DNA of 64,000 bases from Epiperipatus broadwayi (lineage: Eukaryota > Animalia > Onychophora). Below, piece after piece: positions 10,239-40,175 of the stretch (position 1 is its first letter; each line of letters starts with the position of its first letter). The notes beneath the pieces are model-generated. The model did no database searches. It saw nothing but the letters and a program-made list of their open reading frames with translations, and was not told the DNA's origin. Location of the stretch: the NCBI GenBank assembly GCA_028023455.1, contig JAQFVV010000005.1, forward strand, positions 12,462,001 through 12,526,000, written 5' to 3'. Position numbers and translations under genes: made by a program.

Positions 10239-11795
10239 ATGGAAGATAAACCTTTGCATTTCTACTTATCAAACTATAATGCTGCTGAAAACAGTACCTT
10301 AGAATTTTATAAAAATATTTATATAGGAGATAAACCTTTCTATTGCAATGTCTGTCCTTATATGACTTTTAGAAAACATAATTTAAAAAATCATGAAAAA
10401 ATTCATGTGGAAGAAAAACCTTTTCAGTGCAATTTATGTAATTATAAAGCTGCTAAAAAAAAAAATTTTAAAATACATGAAAGAACTCATACTAGAGAAA
10501 AGCCTTTTCATTGCAACTTTTGTAACTACACAGCTGCTCAAAAAAAAAATTTAGAACTTCATGAGAGTTGTCATACAGGATACAAACCATTTCATTGTAA
10601 TTTGTGTAATTATGTGACTGCTAGGAAACATAATTTAAAGAACCATGAAAAAATACATATGGATGAAAAACCTTTTCAATGCAATATATGTAACTATAAA
10701 GCAGCTCAGAAAAAAAATTTAAAAATACATGAAAGAACTCATACAGGAGAAAAACCTTTCCATTGCAATTTTTGTAACTATAAGTCTACTCATAAAGGTA
10801 ATTTAAAAAACCATGAAAGAATTCACTTTGAAGAAAAACCATTCTATTGTAACCTATGTGATTTCAAGACTGCACGGAAGGGTAATTTAAAAGTACACGA
10901 AAGAATTCATAGTGGAGAAAAACCTTTCCATTGCAACTTATGTAATTATAAATCTACTAATAAAGGGAATTTAATCAATCATGCAAGAATTCATTTGGAA
11001 GAAAAGCCTTTTCATTGTAATTTGTGTGATTTCAAAACTGCTAGCAAAGGGAATTTAAAAATACATGATAGAAGTCATACTGGAGAAAAACCTTTTCAAT
11101 GCAACTTGTGCAGTTACAAAACAATTGCAAAAAGTAATTTAAAAGTGCATGAAAGGACTCATACAGAAGACAAATCTTACCACTGTAGTTGGTGTGATTA
11201 CAAAGCTGCTCATAAAATAAGTTTAGAACTTCATGAGAGTAATCACACAGGAGAAAAGCCTCTGCAGTGCAACTTATGTAATTACAAGACTGCTAGTAAA
11301 GGTTGTTTAAAAAATCACGAAAGAATTCATATGGAAGAAAAACCTTTTCATTGCAATGTATGTAATTATAAGTCTGCTCAAAAAGAAGCTTTAAGGATAC
11401 ATGAAAGAAGTCATAGTGGAGAAAAACCATTTCAATGTTGTTTGTGTGATTTCAAAACTGCTTCAAAAAGTTATTTACAAACACATGAAAAAAATCATAG
11501 TGGAGAAAAATCATTCCATTGCAATTTATGTGATTATCAGACTGCTGTGAAATGTAATTTGAAAATACACGCAAGAACTCATACAGGAGAAAAATCTTTT
11601 TATTGTAATTTGTGCACTTTTCGTAGTACTGTAAAAAGTAGTTTAAAAATTCATAAAAGAATTCATACCGGTGAACAATCTTTCTACTGTAATTTGTGTG
11701 ATTACAAAAACACAGAAAAAAATGCTTTACAAAGTCATGAAGAAAGTCATTTCACTTATTATGATACCATTGAAATTCTTGTATGTATTATTTAA
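10239..11795 (+). CDS. C2H2 zinc-finger protein, 17 tandem fingers plus a degenerate N-terminal finger
   Basis: Uninterrupted 518-aa ORF of C-x2-C-x12-H-x3-H repeats with (T/S)GEKP-type linkers. True start and upstream exons uncertain; candidate acceptor at 9410/9411. Confidence 0.92.
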   Translation: MEDKPLHFYLSNYNAAENSTLEFYKNIYIGDKPFYCNVCPYMTFRKHNLKNHEKIHVEEKPFQCNLCNYKAAKKKNFKIHERTHTREKPFHCNFCNYTAAQKKNLELHESCHTGYKPFHCNLCNYVTARKHNLKNHEKIHMDEKPFQCNICNYKAAQKKNLKIHERTHTGEKPFHCNFCNYKSTHKGNLKNHERIHFEEKPFYCNLCDFKTARKGNLKVHERIHSGEKPFHCNLCNYKSTNKGNLINHARIHLEEKPFHCNLCDFKTASKGNLKIHDRSHTGEKPFQCNLCSYKTIAKSNLKVHERTHTEDKSYHCSWCDYKAAHKISLELHESNHTGEKPLQCNLCNYKTASKGCLKNHERIHMEEKPFHCNVCNYKSAQKEALRIHERSHSGEKPFQCCLCDFKTASKSYLQTHEKNHSGEKSFHCNLCDYQTAVKCNLKIHARTHTGEKSFYCNLCTFRSTVKSSLKIHKRIHTGEQSFYCNLCDYKNTEKNALQSHEESHFTYYDTIEILVCII

Positions 11796-15676: not shown

Positions 15677-18600
15677 ATGACAGACAAAAATAAAGCATGG
15701 CTCTTATTCCCAGGAGGCTGTAAAGTCACTAACCAAGGCAGCGGTTGGTGGCCGAAGGTGGAGGGTGCTAAGAATCCCCTGATTGCGGACCCAGGCTGCC
15801 ATTTGATGATGACTTTTTATTTAGGTACTTACAACTGCAGATCACTTTCAAGTGAAGGAAGATTGCAAGAATTAGAAGAAGAACTGTCTTATATTAAATG
15901 GGACATTATTGGACTTTGTGAAGTTAGAAGAAAAGGAGAAGAAACAATTGATTTAAAAAGTGGACATGTACTCTATTATAAAGGCACACATATTGGAAAT
16001 ACAAGTGGAGTAGGATTCATTATAAATAAAAAGTGGAAGAACAATATTGTGGAGATTAATGGTGTATCGGACAGAGTGGCAAGATTAGTTATACAACTTA
16101 ATAGCAGATACCAAATGCAGATAATTCAGGTTTATGCCCCAACAAGTTCTCATAGTGATGAAGTAGTAGAAGATTTTTATATGGATGTACAAAAGGCTTT
16201 TGATCAGAGTAAACAACATTTTAAAATTTATACAACTTAATAGCAGATACCAAATGCAGATAATTCAGGTTTATGCCCCAACAAGTTCTCATAGTGATGA
16301 AGTAGTAGAAGATTTTTATATGGATGTACAAAAGGCTTTTGATCAGAGTAAACAACATTTTAAAATTGTTATGGGAGACTTTAATGCTAGAATTGGTAGA
16401 CAAATGAAAGATGAAATTGCTGTAGGTAATTTTGGTTATGGTAATAGAAATGAGAGAGGACATAGACTTGTGGAGTTTGCAGAAAAAGAAAAACATTATA
16501 TTATGAATTCATTTTTTGAGAAAAATGTTAAAAGGAAATGGACATGGAAGCATCCAAATGAAGGTACAGCAGAATTGGATTATATTTTGACTAACAGAAA
16601 ATACATATTTCAAGATTGTAATGTTCTTAATAAATTTAACCCAGGAAGTGATCATCGATTAGTAAGGTGTAAGTTACGTGTTAATGTAAAACTAGAGAGA
16701 CAAAAATTATTAAGAAAAACAATATTTACAGTTGATATTCCTAATCTTCAGAAACATTCTAATGAATTTAAATTAGAACTTACAAATAGGTTTCAAGTGT
16801 TAGGAGATTTTAAACATGATTCAGATTTGAATGAAATTAATATGAAAATAACTGATACACTTTTAAAAACTGCAACAAACATAGCTGGTAGAAAAAAGCA
16901 GCAATTGACTAATAAAATTTCTACTGAGACTAGAGAATTTATGAAGAAAAGAAGGAATATGAAGATATACAAAAATGATGTATTAAAAAGAATTGAATAT
17001 CTCGAATTTTGTAAAATGGTACGGAAAAGAGTTGAAAATGATATAAGAAAGTATAATTGTGAAATAGCAAGGAAAGCTGTAGAAGAAAATAAAAGTCTCA
17101 AAAATGTTAAACAAAATTTTGGTATTGGTAGGAAATTTCTATCTGCAATAAGAAAAAAAGATGGAATTATTACTAAAAAGAGAGATGACATCATGAAATT
17201 GGTAGAAGATTTTTATCAAGAATTATATAGTAATAAAGAACAAGTACCTCCTATATCTATTACATCTTCCGAATTGTCCAGAATTTTAAATGAAGAAGTG
17301 AGACATGCAATTAAGTGTATGAAGAAAGGAAAGGCTCCAGGAAATGATGGAATTATAATTGATATATTAAAAGAAGCAGGTGAAGAATTAGAAACAATTT
17401 TAGAAAAGTTATATACCAAATGTCTAAATGATAAAGATGTACCGGAAGATTGGAAGAATGCAGTAATAATATTAATATTTAAAAAAGGTGATAAAGAAGA
17501 TATTAGAAATTACAGACCTATCAGCCTTTTATCAGTTTTATATAAAATTTTTACCAAGATAATTACAACTCATCTACAGAGAACTTTGGATTTCCACCAA
17601 CCAAGAGAACAAGCTGGATTTAAAAGTGGTTTTAGTACAATAGATCATATCCAGGTATTGAGAGAAGTCATAGAAAGGACAAACGAATATGAGTTGTCAT
17701 TATGTTTTGGATTTGTAGATTATGAAAAGGCATTCGATTCTATACACATTTCTTCAGTGATTAAAGCATTGGATCATCAAGGTATAGATCCAGGATATTG
17801 TCATATTTTAAAGAATATTTATAAAAATGCAACAGCAACAATTAGATTACATAATGATACTGGAAAAATCAACATTGAGAAAGGTGACTCCATATCTCCA
17901 AAACTCTTTACAGCAGTGCTGCAAAAAGTATTTTGTGGATTAAAATGGAAAACTAAAGGAGTGAAAGTAAATGGAGAGTATTTAAGTCATTTAGATTTCG
18001 CAGATGATGCAGTTGTTTTTGCAAATAATGCTTCAGAGCTGCAGGAAATGTTGCAGGAGTTAGCAGATGAAAGTAGAAAAGTAGGACTAAAGATAAATGT
18101 TAAAAAGACTAAAGTAATGTTTAATCAATTTGCTCAAAATATGAAAATAAAGATTGATTATGAAGAATTAGAAGAAGTTAACAGTTACAAATACCTTGGT
18201 CAGATTATTAATACAAATGGAAACATAATGGAGGAAATTAATCATAGAATTAAACTTGGTTGGAGTGCTTTTGGTAGAAATAACTTGATACTAAAAGGAA
18301 ATATGCCTATGTGTTTGAAAAGGATGGTTTTTAACAAATGTGTTTTACCAGTTTTTACTTATGGATCTGAGACTTGGACACTTAATAGAAGAGCAATACA
18401 GAGACTTGGAGACCATTCAAAGGAGTATGGAGAGCTGTATGTTGGGAGTAACAAGAAGAGATCGAAAACGCAATGTATGGGTAAGACAACAAACAGGTGT
18501 TACTGACCTTATTGAAAAAATTACAAGATTGAAATGGAGTTGGGCTGGACATATTGCTAGAAGAGATGATAATAGATGGACAATTGAAATTTTAAACTGG

Positions 18601-26102: not shown

Positions 26103-26146
26103 TCCACTATATGTATTTCATGCTGAACCAGCACTCATCAGTTGGT
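26103..26146 (-). ncRNA. Hammerhead motif (family A), core intact
   Basis: ACCAA-CTGATGA-GTGCTG-GTT-CAGCAT-GAAA-TACATA-TA-GTGGA; 6-bp stem II with G.U closing pair; stem I weakened. Confidence 0.75.
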
Positions 26147-27925: not shown

Positions 27926-29149
27926 TCACAGCAATTGTATGAGAATCTCAAAAGTATAATGCTTGGTGAAATGGGCAGCTTCATGATTTTCCAAAATATC
28001 TTTCTCCTTGTTTTTATAATCACATAAATGACACATAAATAACATCTCAGTATTTTGACACTTTTCCTGTATATTTGCTTTTTGTTTATTTGAATCAAAT
28101 TCTAATGAGGAAGGATTTATATGAGTAAATTTTTTATGTTTTATAAAAGCATTATGAAAAGCTGATGTATAATCACAGAAACTGCACTGGAAAAATTGTC
28201 CTCGGCTATGTTTTCTTTCATGCATTTTTAAAGTCCTTCTTCCTGTACACCTATAATTACACAGCCTACACCAGAATGGTTTTTCTCCTGTGTGCATTCT
28301 TGCATGCAACTTTAAATTATATTTTATAGCAGTTTTATAATCACACAAAAAGCATTGAAACGGTTTTTCTCCAGTATGTGTTCTTTCATGTAAAATTAAT
28401 CTAGATTTCACTGCAGATTTATATTTACAGAATTTGCACTGGAATGGCTTTTCCCCAGTATGTGTTCTTAGATGTACTTTTAAATTAGCTTTCTCAGCAG
28501 CCTTGTAATTGCATATGCTACAGTGAAACGGTTTATCTCCTGTATGTTTTTTTTCATGTCGTCTTAAACGTCTTTTATCACCAGTCTCATAATCACACAG
28601 CCTGCAATGAAAGGGTTTCTCTCCAGTATGAATTCTTTCATGTATCATTAAGCTAGTATTAGTGACACACTTATAAGCACAAAATCGGCAGTGAAATGGT
28701 TTTTCACTGGTGTGAATGCTTTCATGTATCCTTATAGCATTTTTCATAGGAGATTTATAGTTACATATGCTACATCGATAGCGTTTTTCTCCACTGTGAA
28801 TTTTTTCATGTATTTTTAAGCAATTTTCTATGGCAGTCTTATAACTACATAAATGGCAATAAAAAATCTTTTCTTCTAAATGCGCACTTTCATGATTATT
28901 TAATTTGTCTTTTATAGTAGTCTTATAGTCACATAAACTACACTGGAAAATTTTTAGTTCTATATGACATTTTTCATGAATCTGAAAATTCCCTTTGTGA
29001 AAAGTCTTATAATCACACACTCTACAGTGAAAGCATTTTTTGTCTGCATGAGTTTTTTCATGTATTTTTAAACAACTTTTTATGGCAGTCTTAAAATCAC
29101 ACAAGGTGCAGTCAAAAAGTTTTACTCCCATATGCTTATTTTCAAACAT
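27926..29149 (-). CDS. C2H2 zinc-finger protein, 13 fingers
   Basis: 407-aa ORF of C-x2-C-x12-H-x3/4-H repeats with TGEKP linkers; same finger style and C-terminal tail as 10239-11795. 5' end uncertain. Confidence 0.9.
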   Translation of the reverse strand: MFENKHMGVKLFDCTLCDFKTAIKSCLKIHEKTHADKKCFHCRVCDYKTFHKGNFQIHEKCHIELKIFQCSLCDYKTTIKDKLNNHESAHLEEKIFYCHLCSYKTAIENCLKIHEKIHSGEKRYRCSICNYKSPMKNAIRIHESIHTSEKPFHCRFCAYKCVTNTSLMIHERIHTGEKPFHCRLCDYETGDKRRLRRHEKKHTGDKPFHCSICNYKAAEKANLKVHLRTHTGEKPFQCKFCKYKSAVKSRLILHERTHTGEKPFQCFLCDYKTAIKYNLKLHARMHTGEKPFWCRLCNYRCTGRRTLKMHERKHSRGQFFQCSFCDYTSAFHNAFIKHKKFTHINPSSLEFDSNKQKANIQEKCQNTEMLFMCHLCDYKNKEKDILENHEAAHFTKHYTFEILIQLL

Positions 29150-31759: not shown

Positions 31760-32580
31760 CTATGGTGTTCGAGTAAAAATATTTATATTTTTAACTAAAT
31801 CTATATATATAATTTTAATGCGCAAATACGCGCACAACAACCGAGCTTCATCAGGATTAAATAACAATATATTATAAACTTAAAATAATTATAATATCTA
31901 AAAAATAATGCCCGAGCGCTTTCAAGAGATCTTAGCTCTCATAATCATGGGCAACAAAGAATAAGCATAGCGTGTTGGTATATGCTAAAATATGCTGATA
32001 TATGTAAATTAGTTGAAAATAAATGCGTCAGCTCTAAATGATCCATTTCTTAGAGATTTTGTAACACGCATCTTTCCTATTCATAGCCTTATCATCAATA
32101 GCAATAAAACATGCTTCTTTAACTTTTCTCTTAATGTCATTTCTCTCCCTGCAAACTATTCTTGCATTTTTAGGTTCACATGCATGACCAGCTGATTTCT
32201 GATGTATTGCAAATATTGAGTTGCAATTTGGGTCTACCTGGGCCTTATTGTAAGAATATCTATGCTGGGATAGTCTTGTTGAAAGAGTTGCTTTCATTTC
32301 CCCATAGTATGATGCCATGCAGTTATTTTCTGGGCATGAAATATTATATACGGCCTGAGAGGTGTTGTTGGGTGTTATAATGTCTTTGGTGTTATTAATA
32401 ATTCTATTTGTATTAGGGGGTGTATGAAAGCTAAGTTGAAATTCTTTATTAAACACCGAGTAAAACTTTCTATGGGTAGTTGCAATATACGGTAACAAAA
32501 TTCTATTTTTCTGCTGCTTAATTTCTATGCCTATTTTCTTTATCAATTATTATTTAGCATACATCCTTAGGCACTAATAT
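31760..32580 (-). mobile_element. 5'-truncated Penelope-like element (GIY-YIG endonuclease plus hammerhead-bearing 3' region)
   Basis: ORF 32034-32546 has AVYNISC...C..SYYGEM...RLSQH...H...GH...KRKVKEACFI...MNR, the Penelope-type GIY-YIG domain; hammerhead relics follow the stop codon. Confidence 0.85.
31909..31953 (-). ncRNA. Degenerate Penelope-type minimal hammerhead
   Basis: TGCCC-ATGATTA-T-GAGAG-CTAAGAT-CTCTT-GAAA-GCGC-TC-GGGCA: 5-bp stems I and II, palindromic GCGC loop, two substitutions in CUGAUGA. Confidence 0.65.
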
Positions 32581-33720: not shown

Positions 33721-36700
33721 TTAAATTATCTAATGTGATATTTTCAGGATTGTGTTGTCTTAAAGAGCATGTTATGGATATAAATAAATCTAATAATGAA
33801 ATCACTAAAAAAAAGAATCATGACTGGTTATATTTTTCTTTAATATCATGTTGTACTTTAATATTATATGTATATATGTTAAACTTGTATTTGTTAAGAA
33901 TAATTGAATATATTGCTAGAGGCAGTCATTTTTAAGTCATATAGTATTCGATGGAACAGGTGACAGAAAGTTATTTTGTAAATATGTTTTCATTTCTTAA
34001 ATTCCAAGTATCACAAGCTAATTAATCAAAAGTGCAAAGATGCTTCAATTCCCCTTTCCTCGCCTAAATCAAAAGATTTTGTTCTAAAATATTATCAGTC
34101 ATGCATTTCAATCAAAACTTTACTTTTGCAATTATTGAAATTAAAAAACCAGGTTTGTTTTTTATAAACAGATATAAAAATAAGTTGAACTAATTTTTAA
34201 AAAATAAGGTTAAAAAGTAACGTTAATTTATAGTTTTTTGAAGAGACAAATATGTCATTATAATTATAGGTCCAAACTACAGACCTTTCAAGCTAAAGTA
34301 TGCATGTTATATTTCTTAATATATGAGTACGATCTTAAGTAATGATTATTAATCTCTTGTTTTAAGTGTTAATACTAGAAGAAGTGATTAGGCTTTAATT
34401 TAGCAGAGTAAAATAATATATGATCACTTGATCAAACTTATAATGTTGTTACTCATGCTTATTTTCATTTCCAGGCTTTCATAATTTGAAATTACTTACT
34501 GCTCATTCCTTCTTTAAATTGTGTTGCTGGGTTACTTGTGTTTTTTTTTTATGTGATTAGTTCATATATTTGTTTTGCAATCAGATGACCCTTCCTGCTT
34601 CATGCAAATGGATTGCCCAAGTGTTCTCTTGATATGGTCACACCAAGGCAGACATCTCTCTCATATACATATTCGGATAATTTTTGCTGTTGTCCTTAAT
34701 ATTATTAGCAGTGCAGATAAATTTCCTGCTTGATAGTAATGAGTTCATTACTGGTTATAGGAAATGTTCATTCCTGCTTCATATGATTCTTGGATCTGAT
34801 GAAATTCTTGAGTAAGGTCTCACCAAGGCAGGCATATCCCACCTCTGTCTCATCAGTGGATATAATTGTATTTATGTAAAACATAGCACTGCATTCAGGG
34901 TTTTGTTAAAATATATTTTTAAAGTCTGATATTACAATCATGTAACCAGTCGTAGTTCTAAGTCCAAAGCAGTCATTTATTAATAATAGTAATTTTTTAA
35001 TAGTTAAATAAATACTTACAGTGATTATCCATTAATAAATAGTTAAACCATCATAGAAGGTCCATCCTGGAGATTATTAAGACTATAATCCCTTTATTGC
35101 ATATAAGTGAGAGATAATTAAACTGTTTAGTTACTATTTTTTTTAACCTATAAGAAATGCAATATAATCATAGGTTTAAATCTAATCATATGAATTTTAT
35201 TCTTTTTTTCTTATTTATTGTTACTAATAAATTCATCTACCTTTCACATTTGTGTCTTGTTTACCACAATTAGCATTTTTTTTATAGTTTTTTAAGTCTT
35301 TTGTATCTCACTGATCTCAGCAGAATATAAGAAAAGGGCATATATGCTAATGTCAGATGTGGTAGTCACATGATTATTGTCCTGAGGGGATAAGTAATGA
35401 GATTAGACTTTGTACTATCTGTGGTAATGCATATATCAAATATTACACAGTCATGTGAGTTAGAGATGCTTAGATCCTAAGATTAGTTCTGCTGACTATA
35501 CAAATCTGACCATTACATATACATATTTTTTTTATAATATGGCTCCACCAATGTGAGACATGAGAAATCAACCACATGCTCCTGAGATATGGATTAATAT
35601 ATTTTTCTTGGTCGTTGGTCTATTGCATTTAATTTTATAGTGGTAAAATCTCTTTTGCTCCTTTTTACTGTGGTTAAGATTGTTTAGAGCTATCAATGTG
35701 CAGTTTAAAAAACAGTTTAAGTTCTTATTGTTATCTTCTGAACTTATAGTGTTATGACCAAACTCCATAATTATTATATGAGATGATTATTCTTCATTCA
35801 TGTATGTTATCAGTATATAATAAATTATTTAAAACTATTGATTAAGGATTTGTCTTCATTATATATAACAGTCAACAAATAGTAAGGACCAGCTTTATCT
35901 GGATATGCCATGCATTGTGATAAGTGGCTGAATACTGGTTAAATCAAATAGAGAATACTTGTTGAGGCCTGGTTTTGGAGGTTTTTTATATATATAAAGC
36001 TTAAATAGGGTCCCCCTTGAAAAATTCAATCCTACTTCTCCAAGATACTAACATTCTTGGATAGATTGAATTTTTATATAAATGCTAATATAATTAAAGT
36101 GGAATTAAGATTGACCACACTCATGTTTGTATTATCAGCTACTTACCAGGTTCTCATCTTACAGGCACCATCACTACATACTTTTAAACTAAGATTTGAT
36201 AAGGCCACTGAACTCCTAAATATCTAATTTACTCCAAAGTTCCTAGTAATAATGCAAAAATGTAAAATCAACCTTTACAATTAAGAAGCGGATGAAAAGG
36301 CAATTAATTATAAGGTTGAATTGCAAAAGATGACATTGACCTGCAATTTTGGGATATTTCTTGAATAGTCACCGAGAAATCAGTTTATATGTGATATGAC
36401 ATGCATTAAGAGTTTGATTATTGATGAATTCCAATACTACATATAATACTACAGTATCCCAGGGAACTTTTTCTGAATACAAATAAAAAAATAAAATGAT
36501 ATGTCAAAAACAGAATCAAAGGCCAATGAAAGGGCAACAATTATTTCTGATAAAATACCAAGCAAAGCAAAAAAATCATTTAGCCAACCACATATTAATG
36601 ATAGCTGCCATTTTTATCAATGTATTGGACACACGGAATCTGTCTTGGAAAAAAAAGATAGAATAATAATAATGGTTTAATGGGCCAGAGGAAAACAGCA

Positions 36701-37137
36701 AGCAAGACATGAAGGCATCAATACAAGAGGGGTGCAGAGACACAGAAATGGTGCAGAATTAAGAATATATTTATTTTTATTCTGATACAAATATTATTTA
36801 GTACTATTTGATTCATTATTTATACAAAATAAGGAAATATAAACATATTAAAATAAATAATCACTCAATGGCAAATCTGGTTTAAACCAATGGGCTACTC
36901 ACTGATCAAAATGAATCAAATTAGCTGCGAGATATTGATTTTGAGAAACATGCTAATGTTTTATTTGTCTGAAGGTTTGTAATGATGGTATATTATAAGA
37001 TGTGATATGTTGGACTATTTCCAACATTTATTAGTGTATGTTGAATGTATAGAAAATTTTAAACTTTATTTAAACTTTCCAAATACAAACAACTTGTTAG
37101 TAATAAAAACACAAATAGACAATACAGGTTAGTAATT

Positions 37138-37182
37138 ACACAACGTTTCAAGTAGTATTATTCTCTACTCTTCTTCAGATGT
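37138..37182 (-). ncRNA. Minimal type I hammerhead, core intact (family B, left arm)
   Basis: ACAT-CTGAAGA-A-GAGTAG-AGAATAATA-CTACTT-GAAA-CG-TT-GTGT; palindromic AACGTT at stem III as in Penelope-type dimeric hammerheads. Confidence 0.8.
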
Positions 37183-37260
37183 TGCTGGTCTATATGCACA
37201 GTGACAATATTTGCTTAGAAGTTGAACTCGCACCTTTAGATTTTTGAGTATCGAATTTAA

Positions 37261-37335
37261 GGCTATTCTGTCAGTTGGTAGAGCATTTGCCTTAAATTGG
37301 ATACTCAAGAATCTAAAGGTGCGAGTTCAACTTCT
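37261..37335 (+). repeat. tRNA-derived head with Pol III A/B-box-like motifs (not a functional tRNA)
   Basis: GGC...TCAGTTGGTAGAGC (D-arm/A-box) and GAGTTCAACTTC (T-loop/B-box-like); no acceptor stem or canonical anticodon arm. Confidence 0.6.
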
Positions 37336-37369
37336 AAGCGAATATTGTCACTGTGCATATAGGCCAGCA

Positions 37370-37414
37370 ACACATGAAGAAGAGTAGAGAATAATACTAC
37401 TTGAAACATTGTGT
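37370..37414 (+). ncRNA. Hammerhead motif (family B, right arm), C3 mutated
   Basis: ACAC-ATGAAGA-A-GAGTAG-AGAATAATA-CTACTT-GAAA-CA-TT-GTGT. Confidence 0.7.
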
Positions 37415-37619
37415 AATTACTAACCTGTATTGTCTATTTGTGTGTTATTACTAACAAGTTGTTTGTATTTGGAAAGTTTAAAGTTTAAAATTTTCTATAC
37501 ATTCAACATATACTCATAAATGATGGAAATAGTCCAACATATCACATCTTATGCTAAAGTTTTAGATTGTAATCAAGAACACTCATTCTATTATTTACAA
37601 ATAAACATTAAACTGATCA

Positions 37620-40175
37620 GCTGTACCTGTTGGCTAATATCTTTTGCTTTAAGAACTAAAGTTTTTGAGGAATTGGATAAAATGCAATCTGAGAAAGTGA
37701 TCAAACAGATATCTGATTCTGAATACACTAATCCAAAAGTATCTATTATTAAAAACAACAGAAATACAAACCTGTGGAGATTATTGCTGAATGCTAAATA
37801 AAACCTTACCTTTCAATGTAATTAACCCCTTCCATAAGATAAATGGATACTTTTTATGCCAACTGGAGATAGGGTATTTTCTAGAATACATCTCTGGCAT
37901 GTCTATCTTTAAATTACCAGTAGACATAGCAATTATAACTCATAAGGAACTTTATAAAATTAATCAATTGTGATTTGGTATATTGGCCAGCCATATTCAA
38001 GTAATAGTTGATTGATTAGTGGCTGGAATTCCTGGGGCCATTCCATATTTTGATGATTTCCTACTAGTACCCCAAAGTAAGTAGCAACTCATTCAGTTCA
38101 TTAGAAACTTTTAAATAAATTCATGGAAATAGAAATGAAAATAAACTCTAATAAACATGAGTGTTTAAAGCTGAGGAAATAGAATTGCTTGGATTCAAAG
38201 TTATTTCGCAAGATATTTTTCTTTCTAAGAACAAAGTAAATACTATTCTGAACATGATATCCCCCACTAACAAAAAACAGCTTCAGGGCATTACTTGAAC
38301 TTGTCACTTATTGTAAGAGCTTCATACTGCACAAATTACTATATCAACTGCTGGATAAAAGGCAGAGAGGATGTGAAATATTCAACAAATTCAAGCTTTT
38401 GATAAGTTACAGTGTTTTATAACTAATGCAAAATGAATTAACCCACTGCAATCCAAACAGGGAATTGATCCTAAAGTGTGATGCTTCATCAGTTACATTG
38501 GAGCAGTATTAATTCACCCTAACAGAAATGGGAGTGATAAACTTATTATCTTCATTTTTCATATATCCATTGGAGCTAAAAAAAAAACTTACTTTCAAAT
38601 AGACAGAGACTCTAGCCTTAATAGATGTTAAAAAATTTGATCGACATTTATTTTACGAACTGATAAATCTTTTATTAGACATATTTGATTATAAAAGGGG
38701 ATTTTCCCAACAATCCCTCTCCACATGCTAAGATTGTTCAACTTGTTGAGCACTTATGGCTTTACACTTTGTTATGTAGAAGAAAAATCATCCCACATGC
38801 TGATTCTCTTAGTAATTATCAGATAAAAGTAAAAAAAAAAAAAAACAAATAAAATATAAGAATAAACTATTAATAAATATAATCAATTGAGAAAATAGTA
38901 ATCAAATAAACAGTAAAGCAATAGCTCACTGGACAAAAAATGACCCAGGGAATCAGTTTCTTAATAAATGGATACTCAAAAAGTGGCTAATTAACAAAGC
39001 ACAATATATACATAAAGGCTTCTGGGAAAGAAGGCAGAACTATACATTAAAAATGAATATCTTGTGGAACAATTGAATTGTCATACTGCCAGAGACCGCA
39101 AACAGATCTTTATTGCATTCTGGTAATCTTAAAATACTGAGAAACAAAAATGCTGATTAGATTTTATGTCTATTGGACTGAAATAAAATTTCAGATATTG
39201 TCAACACTTCAAAATGAATCAAAGTGAGCCAGCTAAAATCGAGACAATTGTTGGTCCCTAGCAGCTGAACCTAGGAAAGATTCCACTTAGACCATGCTGG
39301 ATATTGGAAGGGCAAAAAAATATATCATAATTGTTGATGCCTATTTTAAATGATTAGAAGTAGTAATTGTACCCAACTTCAATATTACAAAGACAATTAC
39401 TTTTTGAGGAAAATATTTGCAACTCATGGTCTTCCTTTGATCATTGTTACCAATAATGTAACAAACTTTATATCTAGCCAATTCAAAAACTTCTGTGCAA
39501 ATAATAAAATCAATCACATACTGGCATTACCAATACATCAAGAGAACAATGGACAAGCAGAATGTTTGGTGTATAAGGTTAAAAAATCTTCAAAAGAAAA
39601 CAGCAAATGATTGGAGTGTACATAGTTAGAAAACTGCTAAATTAGCATGCAACTCCATCTACTGTTCACAACAGAAACTTGGCAGAAATATTAATAAATT
39701 GTATGTTTGAAAACCAATTTTATATAGTCTCAAACCTAAATCTATTACCAAAGGAAATTAAGTGGCTAATTATGGCCGTAGTCATTCAAAATTGATTCAA
39801 AAGTTTTATGTAATATGTACCCAGCCAAAAAAGAATTCCAGCTACAATTGTGGCCAGAAAGAATTAAAAATAGTGAAAAGCCATGAAGGTCAACTTAATA
39901 AACATAAGGAACTACTATGTATCAATTTTAGTCAGCCTGAAATACCCAAAACATAAACAGTACTGTCAGATTCCATAAACCAGCAATTCTGCCGGGCAAC
40001 CAATGGTTAGTTCATACCAAAGTTTTTCCAGCATTAGAATTAGAGGTAATAAGTAGTCATAATACCAAGAAAGAGGACAGTGTAACCACTACTTAAAAAA
40101 ACAGCAAAAGAAATAGGAAACTATCAACGTATCTTTTAGAATATAAATAACTTATTTCATCTAGGAGAAAAGAAA
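37620..40175 (+). mobile_element. Decayed Gypsy pol (RT, RNase H, integrase) ending in a polypurine tract
   Basis: EELDKMQSEKVI (RT N-terminus), PYFDD (38043-38057), KCDASS (RNase H, ~38474), FATHGLPLIIVTNN...NNGQAE (integrase, ORF 39350-39610), PPT AGGAGAAAAGAAA at 40163-40175. Confidence 0.8.

Follow-up and report, generated by a model that had tools for sequence, protein, structure and literature searches.

A head-to-head pair of hammerhead-bearing retroelement copies with a Penelope-style layout in an onychophoran genome

What kind of event leaves two nearly complementary copies of a ribozyme-bearing sequence lying back to back in an animal genome? The question is raised by a 64,000-nucleotide stretch of the Epiperipatus broadwayi assembly GCA_028023455.1 (contig JAQFVV010000005.1, positions 12,462,001 to 12,526,000, forward strand), hereafter the window, in which a first-pass annotation had described a near-perfect palindrome as a Penelope-mobilised short interspersed nuclear element (SINE) with a tRNA-like head and a hammerhead in each arm. 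The segment in question, 36962-37552, is probably one old retrotransposition of a short, non-coding, very high-copy hammerhead element, inserted in the style of Penelope-like elements (PLEs). The evidence for this comes from the arms and their junction, from the boundaries of the insertion, and from the letters that the other members of the family carry in public sequencing runs.

The palindrome, its boundaries and its centre

A repeat search returned an inverted repeat, 36995-37263 / 37289-37552, made of three collinear arm pairs that are 95-100% complementary (74 nt at 96%, 38 nt at 100% and 158 nt at 95%) and separated by an innermost gap of 25 nt. When aligned in the same sense, the arms share ~264 nt and are set apart by ~12 substitutions and by two indels, of 1 nt and 4 nt, giving an overall complementarity of ~95% around an asymmetric 25-nt centre. 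The divergence of ~4.5% falls partly at CpG sites (GCGA/GCAA, ACGT/ACAT). The head string TCAGTTGGTAGAGC occupies 37271-37284, and GAGTTCAAC occupies 37323-37331 with a mirror copy in the left arm. Repeat search and arm alignment agree that the 558-bp palindrome at 36995-37552 is real, and the tail of ~140 nt that had been proposed for each arm corresponds to ~138 nt found after the hammerhead motif. A blastn search (word size 7) found no further copies inside the 64-kb window.

In order to place the locus within its family, Logan contigs of four public runs were aligned to 36300-38300; these comprised same-species DNA, low-coverage skims of two other species, and a same-species library labelled as RNA. 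Contigs matched the unique flanks without difference at 36300-36772 and 37527-38300. Summed contig depth was ~50-400 in the flanks and 1 × 10^5 to 3 × 10^6 over ~36962-37552 in all four runs; summed contig depth is not copy number, and the contrast with the flanks nonetheless spans three to four orders of magnitude (10^3 to 10^4). Depth peaks in the tail (up to 3.0 × 10^6, compared with flanks of ~1 × 10^2) and is 5-25-fold lower in the head. At least three species carry the family, and RNA-labelled libraries of at least seven coded species contain 31-mers that match the unit exactly, a finding that denotes presence and not transcription from a promoter of its own. Just left of the insertion, 36702-36902 consists of another, moderately repeated sequence (depth 1.6 × 10^3 to 5 × 10^3 compared with ~1 × 10^2) that also occurs in the runs of the two other species.

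The edges of the repeated unit were set by these contigs at 36960-36962 on the left (loose ends, four runs) and at 37552 on the right (loose ends and depth), and the target-site duplication (TSD) outlines the unit 36962-37552 whose edges had thus been fixed independently of it. Family depth already reaches 9 × 10^4 in the bin 36903-36969 and so starts before the arm edge at 36995. The 33-nt extension that this reveals exists on the left only; it has no counterpart on the right, where depth drops to flank level after 37552. A reading of the extension as the start of a second tandem unit, as expected from a circular or tandem template, was rejected, as it has no similarity to the rest of the unit (940/1000 shuffles scored as well). 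Within the tails, a direct repeat of ~27 nt, ATTACTAACCTGTATTGTCTATTTGTG + TTATTACTAACAAGTTGTTTGTATTTGG, lies at 37415-37480 with its mirror at 37067-37137; many joints in family contigs fall in or near it, and the number of its units may vary between copies.

The centre of the palindrome is where the two copies can be told apart. The 5' end of the family was taken from the loose-end consensus of other copies in two runs, which reads ...GCCTTTGACAGAATAGC / TCAGTTGG (also read as ...GCCTTTGACAGAATAGC / TCAGTTGGTAGAGC...), the slash marking the boundary; the loose-end strings themselves (X5 at 37279, agreement 0.85; X12 at 37271, agreement 0.82) diverge upstream of GCCTTT, and GCCTTTGACAG is a candidate for the 5'-end string of the family. 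At the locus, 37264-37272 reads TATTCTGTC, preceded by C at 37263, which is the reverse complement of GACAGAATA(G). Because this segment matches the reverse complement of the family 5' end, the 25-nt spacer is composite: the first nucleotides of the left copy fill its left 9-10 nt, and the rest is the D-arm remnant of the right copy. The left copy therefore reaches nucleotide 1 of the family while lacking 20 nt, the whole D-arm, with a GC microhomology flanking the deletion. The copies meet at 37272/37273 with no target DNA between them.

Both arms, moreover, carry the same unusual letters. States found at ~1% of family depth are common to the two arms at 37304 (where the C is also present at the mirror position 37248) and at 37510 with 37037, and minority states are shared at 37386/37166 and 37402/37150. 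Both copies were therefore drawn from the same source, with later drift of ~4.5%. A single TSD, abutting arms and shared rare states together mark the two copies, as judged from sequence, as the product of one event.

Hammerhead motifs and the tRNA-like head

Each arm contains a hammerhead-like motif ~100 nt from the centre, the left with an intact core, as the first-pass annotation had claimed; both the reading of the motifs and a descriptor search bear this out. The left-arm motif reads ACAU CUGAAGA A GAGUAG-loop9-CUACUU GAAA CG UU/GUGU, with a G10.1-U11.1 wobble. It contains the conserved core C3-U4-G5-A6-N7-G8-A9 ... G12-A13-A14 together with A15.1/U16.1 and H17, and the minimum free energy (MFE) fold of the 45-mer consists of exactly helix I (4 bp) and helix II (6 bp). 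A descriptor for the minimal hammerhead ribozyme (min-HHR), requiring a 4-bp helix I, CUGANGA, an optional bulge, a helix II of at least 5 bp, GAAA, paired 15.2/16.2, U and H (non-G), matched this motif only in the 64-kb window and matched 0/300 Markov-random windows of the same dinucleotide make-up. The left-arm motif is far beyond chance. The right-arm motif departs from the core, with A3 in place of C3 (unpaired with G8), and its ACGU palindrome has decayed to ACAU.

The motif is not the canonical type-I hammerhead (Rfam Hammerhead_1), which has a helix III hairpin and loop-loop contacts. Helix III and loop 3 are absent; in the left arm GAAA-CG-UU gives the ACGU palindrome at 15.1-16.1, positions 15.2-16.2 are palindromic, an arrangement by which two motifs could build a joint helix III, and a bulged A lies between A9 and 10.1. 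The features listed for the min-HHRs of PLEs by Cervera & de la Pena 2014 (PMC4209133) are C3, G10.1-C11.1, a bulge after A9, ACGU at 15.1-16.1, U17 and the helix lengths, and the letters of the family majority show exactly these. The same source gives a helix II of 6-8 bp, a helix I of 4-5 bp and dual motifs 100-700 bp apart on opposite strands as the norm; here helix II has 6 bp and helix I 4 bp, and the two motifs lie ~230 bp apart on opposite strands. Minimal hammerheads are also the subject of Lunse, Weinberg & Breaker 2017, as cited in PMC4209133 and PMC7761336. Judged by all its sequence features, the motif belongs to the published min-HHR class of PLEs, whose members cleave weakly and only as dimers (PMC4209133).

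The letters of the family, taken from contig tables and not from an alignment of copies, repair what is defective at the locus. At 37374 the family majority (~90% of depth) has A>C, which restores C3. The 10.1-11.1 pair, G-U in both arms here, is G-C in ~70-80% of family depth (37402 T>C with its mirror 37150 A>G), and 37386 A>G with its mirror 37166 T>C changes a helix-II pair from A-U to G-U. Both polymorphic helix-II positions thus retain pairing (A-U/G-U and G-C/G-U). The change 37145 G>A is a CpG decay of the ACGU palindrome, for which the family has CG and TG variants. The resulting family hammerhead, ACAC CUGAAGA A GAGUGG-loop-CUACUC GAAA CG UU/GUGU, is a complete textbook minimal hammerhead motif of the Penelope type, and the combined consensus that had been assembled from the two arms coincides with this family majority (37374 A>C, 37402 T>C, 37150 A>G).

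At the 5' end, 19 nt of the family string TAGCTCAGTTGGTAGAGCA are identical to positions 8-26 of the E. coli tRNA-Lys (lysT), the part that forms box A and the D-arm. The right copy retains 15/19 of these nucleotides and the left copy none, and the family and locus alignments each beat 2000/2000 shuffles. These alignments give good support to a box-A segment of tRNA origin at the family's 5' end. Likeness to tRNA beyond the D-arm was rejected, as the part that follows, including GAGTTCAAC, aligns at chance level (its score is equalled by 573/3000 shuffles and by 13% of random pieces of the window). The distance between box A and the box-B-like AGTTCAACTTC exceeds that of a class-I tRNA by ~13 nt. 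As regards the marks of a tRNA-derived SINE, the family therefore carries the 5' box A and not a recognisable tRNA or a properly placed box B. The two short consensus strings suggest that the copies share a 5' boundary lying a few nucleotides ahead of tRNA position 1, which is where an RNA polymerase III (Pol III) start would lie. Of the two copies at the locus, the right has a truncated box A and the left has lost it by deletion; neither is therefore likely to be a live Pol III unit.

Table 1. Position, strand and basis of the features that make up the insertion and its target-site duplications
Feature	Positions	Strand	Basis
Left TSD GCTAATGTTTTA	36952-36963	.	11/12 match to right duplication
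One-sided 33-nt extension of left copy ("tail"; true 3' end of many family copies)	36962-36994	-	read depth, loose ends
3' tail of left (inverted) copy, with ~27-nt internal direct repeat (ATTACTAAC...TTTG)	36995-37137	-	repeat search, arm alignment; highest family depth
Minimal type-I hammerhead motif, intact core	37138-37182	-	descriptor match and MFE fold
Body and 3' part of left-copy head, including box-B-like GAGTTCAAC	37183-37263	-	sequence, arm alignment
5'-most nucleotides of left copy	37264-37272	-	reverse complement of family GACAGAATA
Right-copy head, 5'-truncated at ~tRNA position 12-14: D-arm remnant TCAGTTGGTAGAGCA and box-B-like GAGTTCAAC	37271-37345	+	D-arm identity
Right-copy hammerhead motif, mutated (AUGAAGA and GAAACAUU)	37370-37414	+	motif reading, arm alignment
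3' tail of right copy, without the 33-nt extension	37415-37552	+	repeat search, arm alignment
Right TSD GCTAAAGTTTTA	37553-37564	.	11/12 match to left duplication

Proposed insertion route and rival explanations

The element as reconstructed would consist of a 5' head with a tRNA D-arm/box-A segment, a body of ~25 nt, a 45-nt minimal dimer-type hammerhead and a tail of ~140-170 nt. Its presumed route into the genome is target-primed reverse transcription as used by PLEs, which combine a GIY-YIG endonuclease with a reverse transcriptase, and the products of such a reaction would be a direct copy, a head-to-head inverted copy, an extension of ~33 bp on one of the outer ends, and a TSD whose length varies. 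A Penelope-type enzyme is the putative agent, the head may be a former Pol III promoter, and the hammerhead would cleave as a dimer through its ACGU palindrome, after GUU and before GUGU.

The locus shows what this route predicts, with an inverted, 5'-truncated copy at the 5' end of the direct copy and a 33-nt extension at one end only. PLE insertions often carry an extension of 30-40 bp at one end (Craig et al. 2021, PMC8557442), and the locus, which combines a 5'-truncated inverted copy with a 33-bp tail on one side and a TSD, therefore matches the published PLE footprint (PMC8557442). In addition, joints between left-arm and right-arm coordinates occur at other breakpoints in many contigs, for example 37103>37421 in four contigs, and 37263>37312, where the inserted letters carry on a different head variant. 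Because a plain single copy cannot yield joints between the left and the right arm, head-to-head pairs seem to be recurrent in the family, though these joints are suggestive only. The palindrome is the ordinary footprint of PLE-style retrotransposition, and neither a special structure nor a new class.

Several observations weigh against this account. The sides of the contig joints are short (20-50 nt, 85% likeness) and may be unreliable, and no read or contig among the Logan contigs of the four public runs spans the palindrome. No PLE that shares the tail was found, either in the sole PLE remnant of the window or in scans of public contigs, and searches of public metagenome contigs (with the tail, then with the hammerhead pattern) and of viral contigs gave 0 matches; since no tail-sharing PLE was found, the link to PLEs rests on the footprint and the ribozyme type. 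The 45-nt left-arm motif is thermodynamically not unusual (z -0.2). Rfam hammerhead models are silent, with no match at E<=10 in 1.6 kb and none at gathering score in the window, a silence that is expected because the motif is without helix III. For the head, Rfam reports no tRNA in the window, in 1.6 kb or in the 111-nt centre, and ARAGORN finds none in the window or in composite family heads at relaxed thresholds (-ps80). Runs of T4-T5 on the sense strand, 60-150 nt before the 3' end, could also stop Pol III early.

These results trim the original proposal without overturning it. A hammerhead-bearing, non-autonomous element with a PLE-style layout stands, while the tRNA head and the activity of the locus were overstated: the 19-nt D-arm/box A holds at the level of the family, the remainder of the head does not, and the covariance search for tRNA similarity that the proposal itself had named as decisive came back negative for this copy. 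A Pol III-driven SINE with a PLE partner, existing outside flatworms and common to ten or more related species, in which the hammerhead processes the SINE RNA, is a tentative possibility that we would sooner doubt than assert.

The best-surviving alternative, which we consider improbable, is that there is no separate SINE, and that the locus holds a pair of 5'-truncated 3' ends (pseudo-long terminal repeats, pLTRs) of an autonomous PLE whose pLTR contains a tRNA-derived module, the apparent head being internal PLE sequence. PLE copies are mostly 5'-truncated, and their hammerhead follows the endonuclease gene, within the pLTR (PMC8557442, PMC4209133), as is also the case at 31.9-32.5 kb of the window, and the 5-25-fold rise in depth from head to tail fits either 5' truncation or a tail common to a longer element. 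This alternative is at odds with the loose-end strings of two runs, which agree up to ...GCCTTTGACAGAATAGC and differ upstream, suggesting a common 5' boundary; with the left copy, which ends exactly at that tRNA position 1; and with the locus itself, where no open reading frame (ORF) remnant adjoins the element.

We consider it very improbable that a single insertion was later inverted and duplicated at the DNA level by a fold-back (a replication template switch), or that the assembly produced the palindrome as a fold-back chimera. Palindromes are classic artefacts of long reads and assemblies, PLE structures are known to trouble assemblies (PMC8557442), and no independent read spans the structure. 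A fresh artefact would not show ~12 substitutions and 2 indels between its arms, and the earlier argument from mismatched arms and a TSD is upheld by these differences and by the 11/12 TSD. The 5' ends of the arms also differ, one reaching nucleotide 1 with an internal 20-nt deletion and the other beginning at nt 12-14, the 3' extension is one-sided, and one TSD encloses both copies, whereas a later duplication would leave a TSD around one arm only. Least credible of all are two independent insertions of the same family that met head-to-head by chance, or a functional hairpin-RNA or microRNA (miRNA)-like gene: the extreme abundance of the family does make nested or adjacent insertions happen and Rfam does return plant miRNA precursors (MIR530), but the copies have no target DNA between them and one TSD for both, the arms share states found in ~1% of the family, and the miRNA matches are sub-threshold, on both strands and to plant families, as any long hairpin gives.

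The hairpin itself deserves separate comment. A transcript of the whole unit folds, by computation, into a hairpin of ~265 bp (-409 kcal/mol, z -50), which is a computed potential only and agrees with the ~265-bp read-through hairpin that had been predicted. Since each copy is oriented away from the centre, RNAs started at the two heads would have like sequences and not complementary ones. Double-stranded RNA would therefore arise only by read-through from outside, and a hammerhead could not fold within such a hairpin. The sub-threshold Rfam matches to plant miRNA precursors (MIR530, 58 bits against a gathering score of 85) were rejected as generic long-hairpin matches. With arms ~4.5% apart, box A lost and one hammerhead without C3, the element at this locus is a decayed fossil, and any remaining activity would be passive, limited to the hairpin RNA that read-through from outside would yield.

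Neighbouring elements, known relatives and meaning

Other mobile and repetitive sequences lie elsewhere in the window. A PLE remnant at 31912-32546 (-) contains a 170-aa ORF (32034-32546) with motifs of a GIY-YIG/CCHH-type endonuclease; Pfam is silent on it, and in the ESM-Atlas its closest clusters consist of eukaryotic GIY-YIG and RVT_1+GIY-YIG proteins. Past the stop of this ORF, at a distance of ~75 nt (~31912-31960), comes a min-HHR whose core is A3-U8 and whose palindrome is AGCGCU. PLEs with min-HHRs do exist in this genome; as a partner of the element studied here the remnant was rejected, its 3' region being unrelated to the tail. A long interspersed nuclear element at 15677-18506 (+) encodes an AP-endonuclease and a reverse transcriptase in ORFs of 187 and 773 aa, and its best protein homologues are at most 56% identical and from other taxa (psyllids among those named, at 46-50%), with neither the exact protein nor a close relative in the protein collection. 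C2H2 zinc-finger arrays occupy long single ORFs at 10239-11795 (+, 518 aa) and 27926-29149 (-, 407 aa). At 26116-26141 (-), CUGAUGA, a 4-bp stem and GAAA form a hammerhead-like string with unconvincing helices I and III, which is probably due to chance. At 1847-2598 a relaxed scan for the hammerhead core turned up no intact motif, and blastn gave no similarity between that stretch and the element described here.

Four known systems invite comparison. With the min-HHRs of PLEs the element shares CUGANGA/GAAA, the lack of helix III, the ACGU palindrome, massive dispersed occurrence and opposite-strand pairs; it differs in being a ~320-nt non-coding unit with a 5' tRNA D-arm that does not lie behind a PLE endonuclease gene, and in that, at this locus, both arms have a G-U pair at 10.1-11.1 and one arm has a dead core (A3). 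With the insertion architecture of PLEs (PMC8557442) it shares the inverted 5'-truncated copy abutting a direct copy, the 33-bp extension and a TSD of 10-12 bp, whereas the locus has no reverse transcriptase or endonuclease ORF and no partial tandem (pseudo-LTR).

Sm-alpha elements and Sj-alpha elements of schistosomes, both SINE-like (Ferbeyre 1998, Laha 2000, as cited in PMC2770079 and PMC8490949), are likewise short, high-copy, non-coding retroposons with a tRNA-related 5' part and a type-I hammerhead. tRNAscan-SE recognises tRNA-Gln pseudogenes in the heads of Sm-alpha, and the Sm-alpha ribozyme is canonical and was found with the Rfam motif (PMC2770079). In the present element, by contrast, tRNA and hammerhead models are silent, the ribozyme is minimal and without helix III, only the D-arm is demonstrably tRNA-like, and there is no sequence relationship; the element resembles Sm-alpha in its plan and does not belong to that family.

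Animal non-LTR retrozymes consist of tandem units in which classical type-I hammerheads delimit circular RNA monomers (Cervera & de la Pena 2020, PMC7229834); a review describes them as lacking promoters (PMC7761336), and they have been argued to be non-autonomous PLE derivatives (Li, Clavereau & Pollet 2026 preprint, 10.64898/2026.07.22.740005). The present element resembles them in being non-autonomous, non-coding, hammerhead-bearing and present in RNA libraries, and in having a proposed dependence on PLEs. It differs in that the locus is inverted and not tandem, the motif is minimal and the family has a box-A-like head, and it is not a retrozyme in the sense of these descriptions. The box-A-headed min-HHR element is a variant between known kinds. 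No description of such a family outside schistosomes was found in the literature searched, which did not extend to Repbase and most subscription journals, so its novelty is not proven.

According to reviews, the hammerhead retroelements of animals lack a promoter of their own, and what the minimal hammerheads of PLEs do is unknown (PMC7761336). The locus adds one resolved junction to this field, in a decayed pair of copies: the 5' ends are unequal, a deletion of 20 nt is flanked by microhomology, and a 33-nt tail and an 11/12 TSD are present. The element would be a compact natural substrate for studying template recognition and copying by enzymes of the Penelope type, and the reason why they leave copies inverted and tails on one side only, and it would also serve the question of whether the ribozyme is needed for PLE-type copying. 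If the family were indeed a SINE with a PLE partner, the steps of PLE integration, including head-to-head copies, the one-sided tail and possibly snap-back priming at the 5' end of the RNA, would be readable base by base at thousands of junctions.

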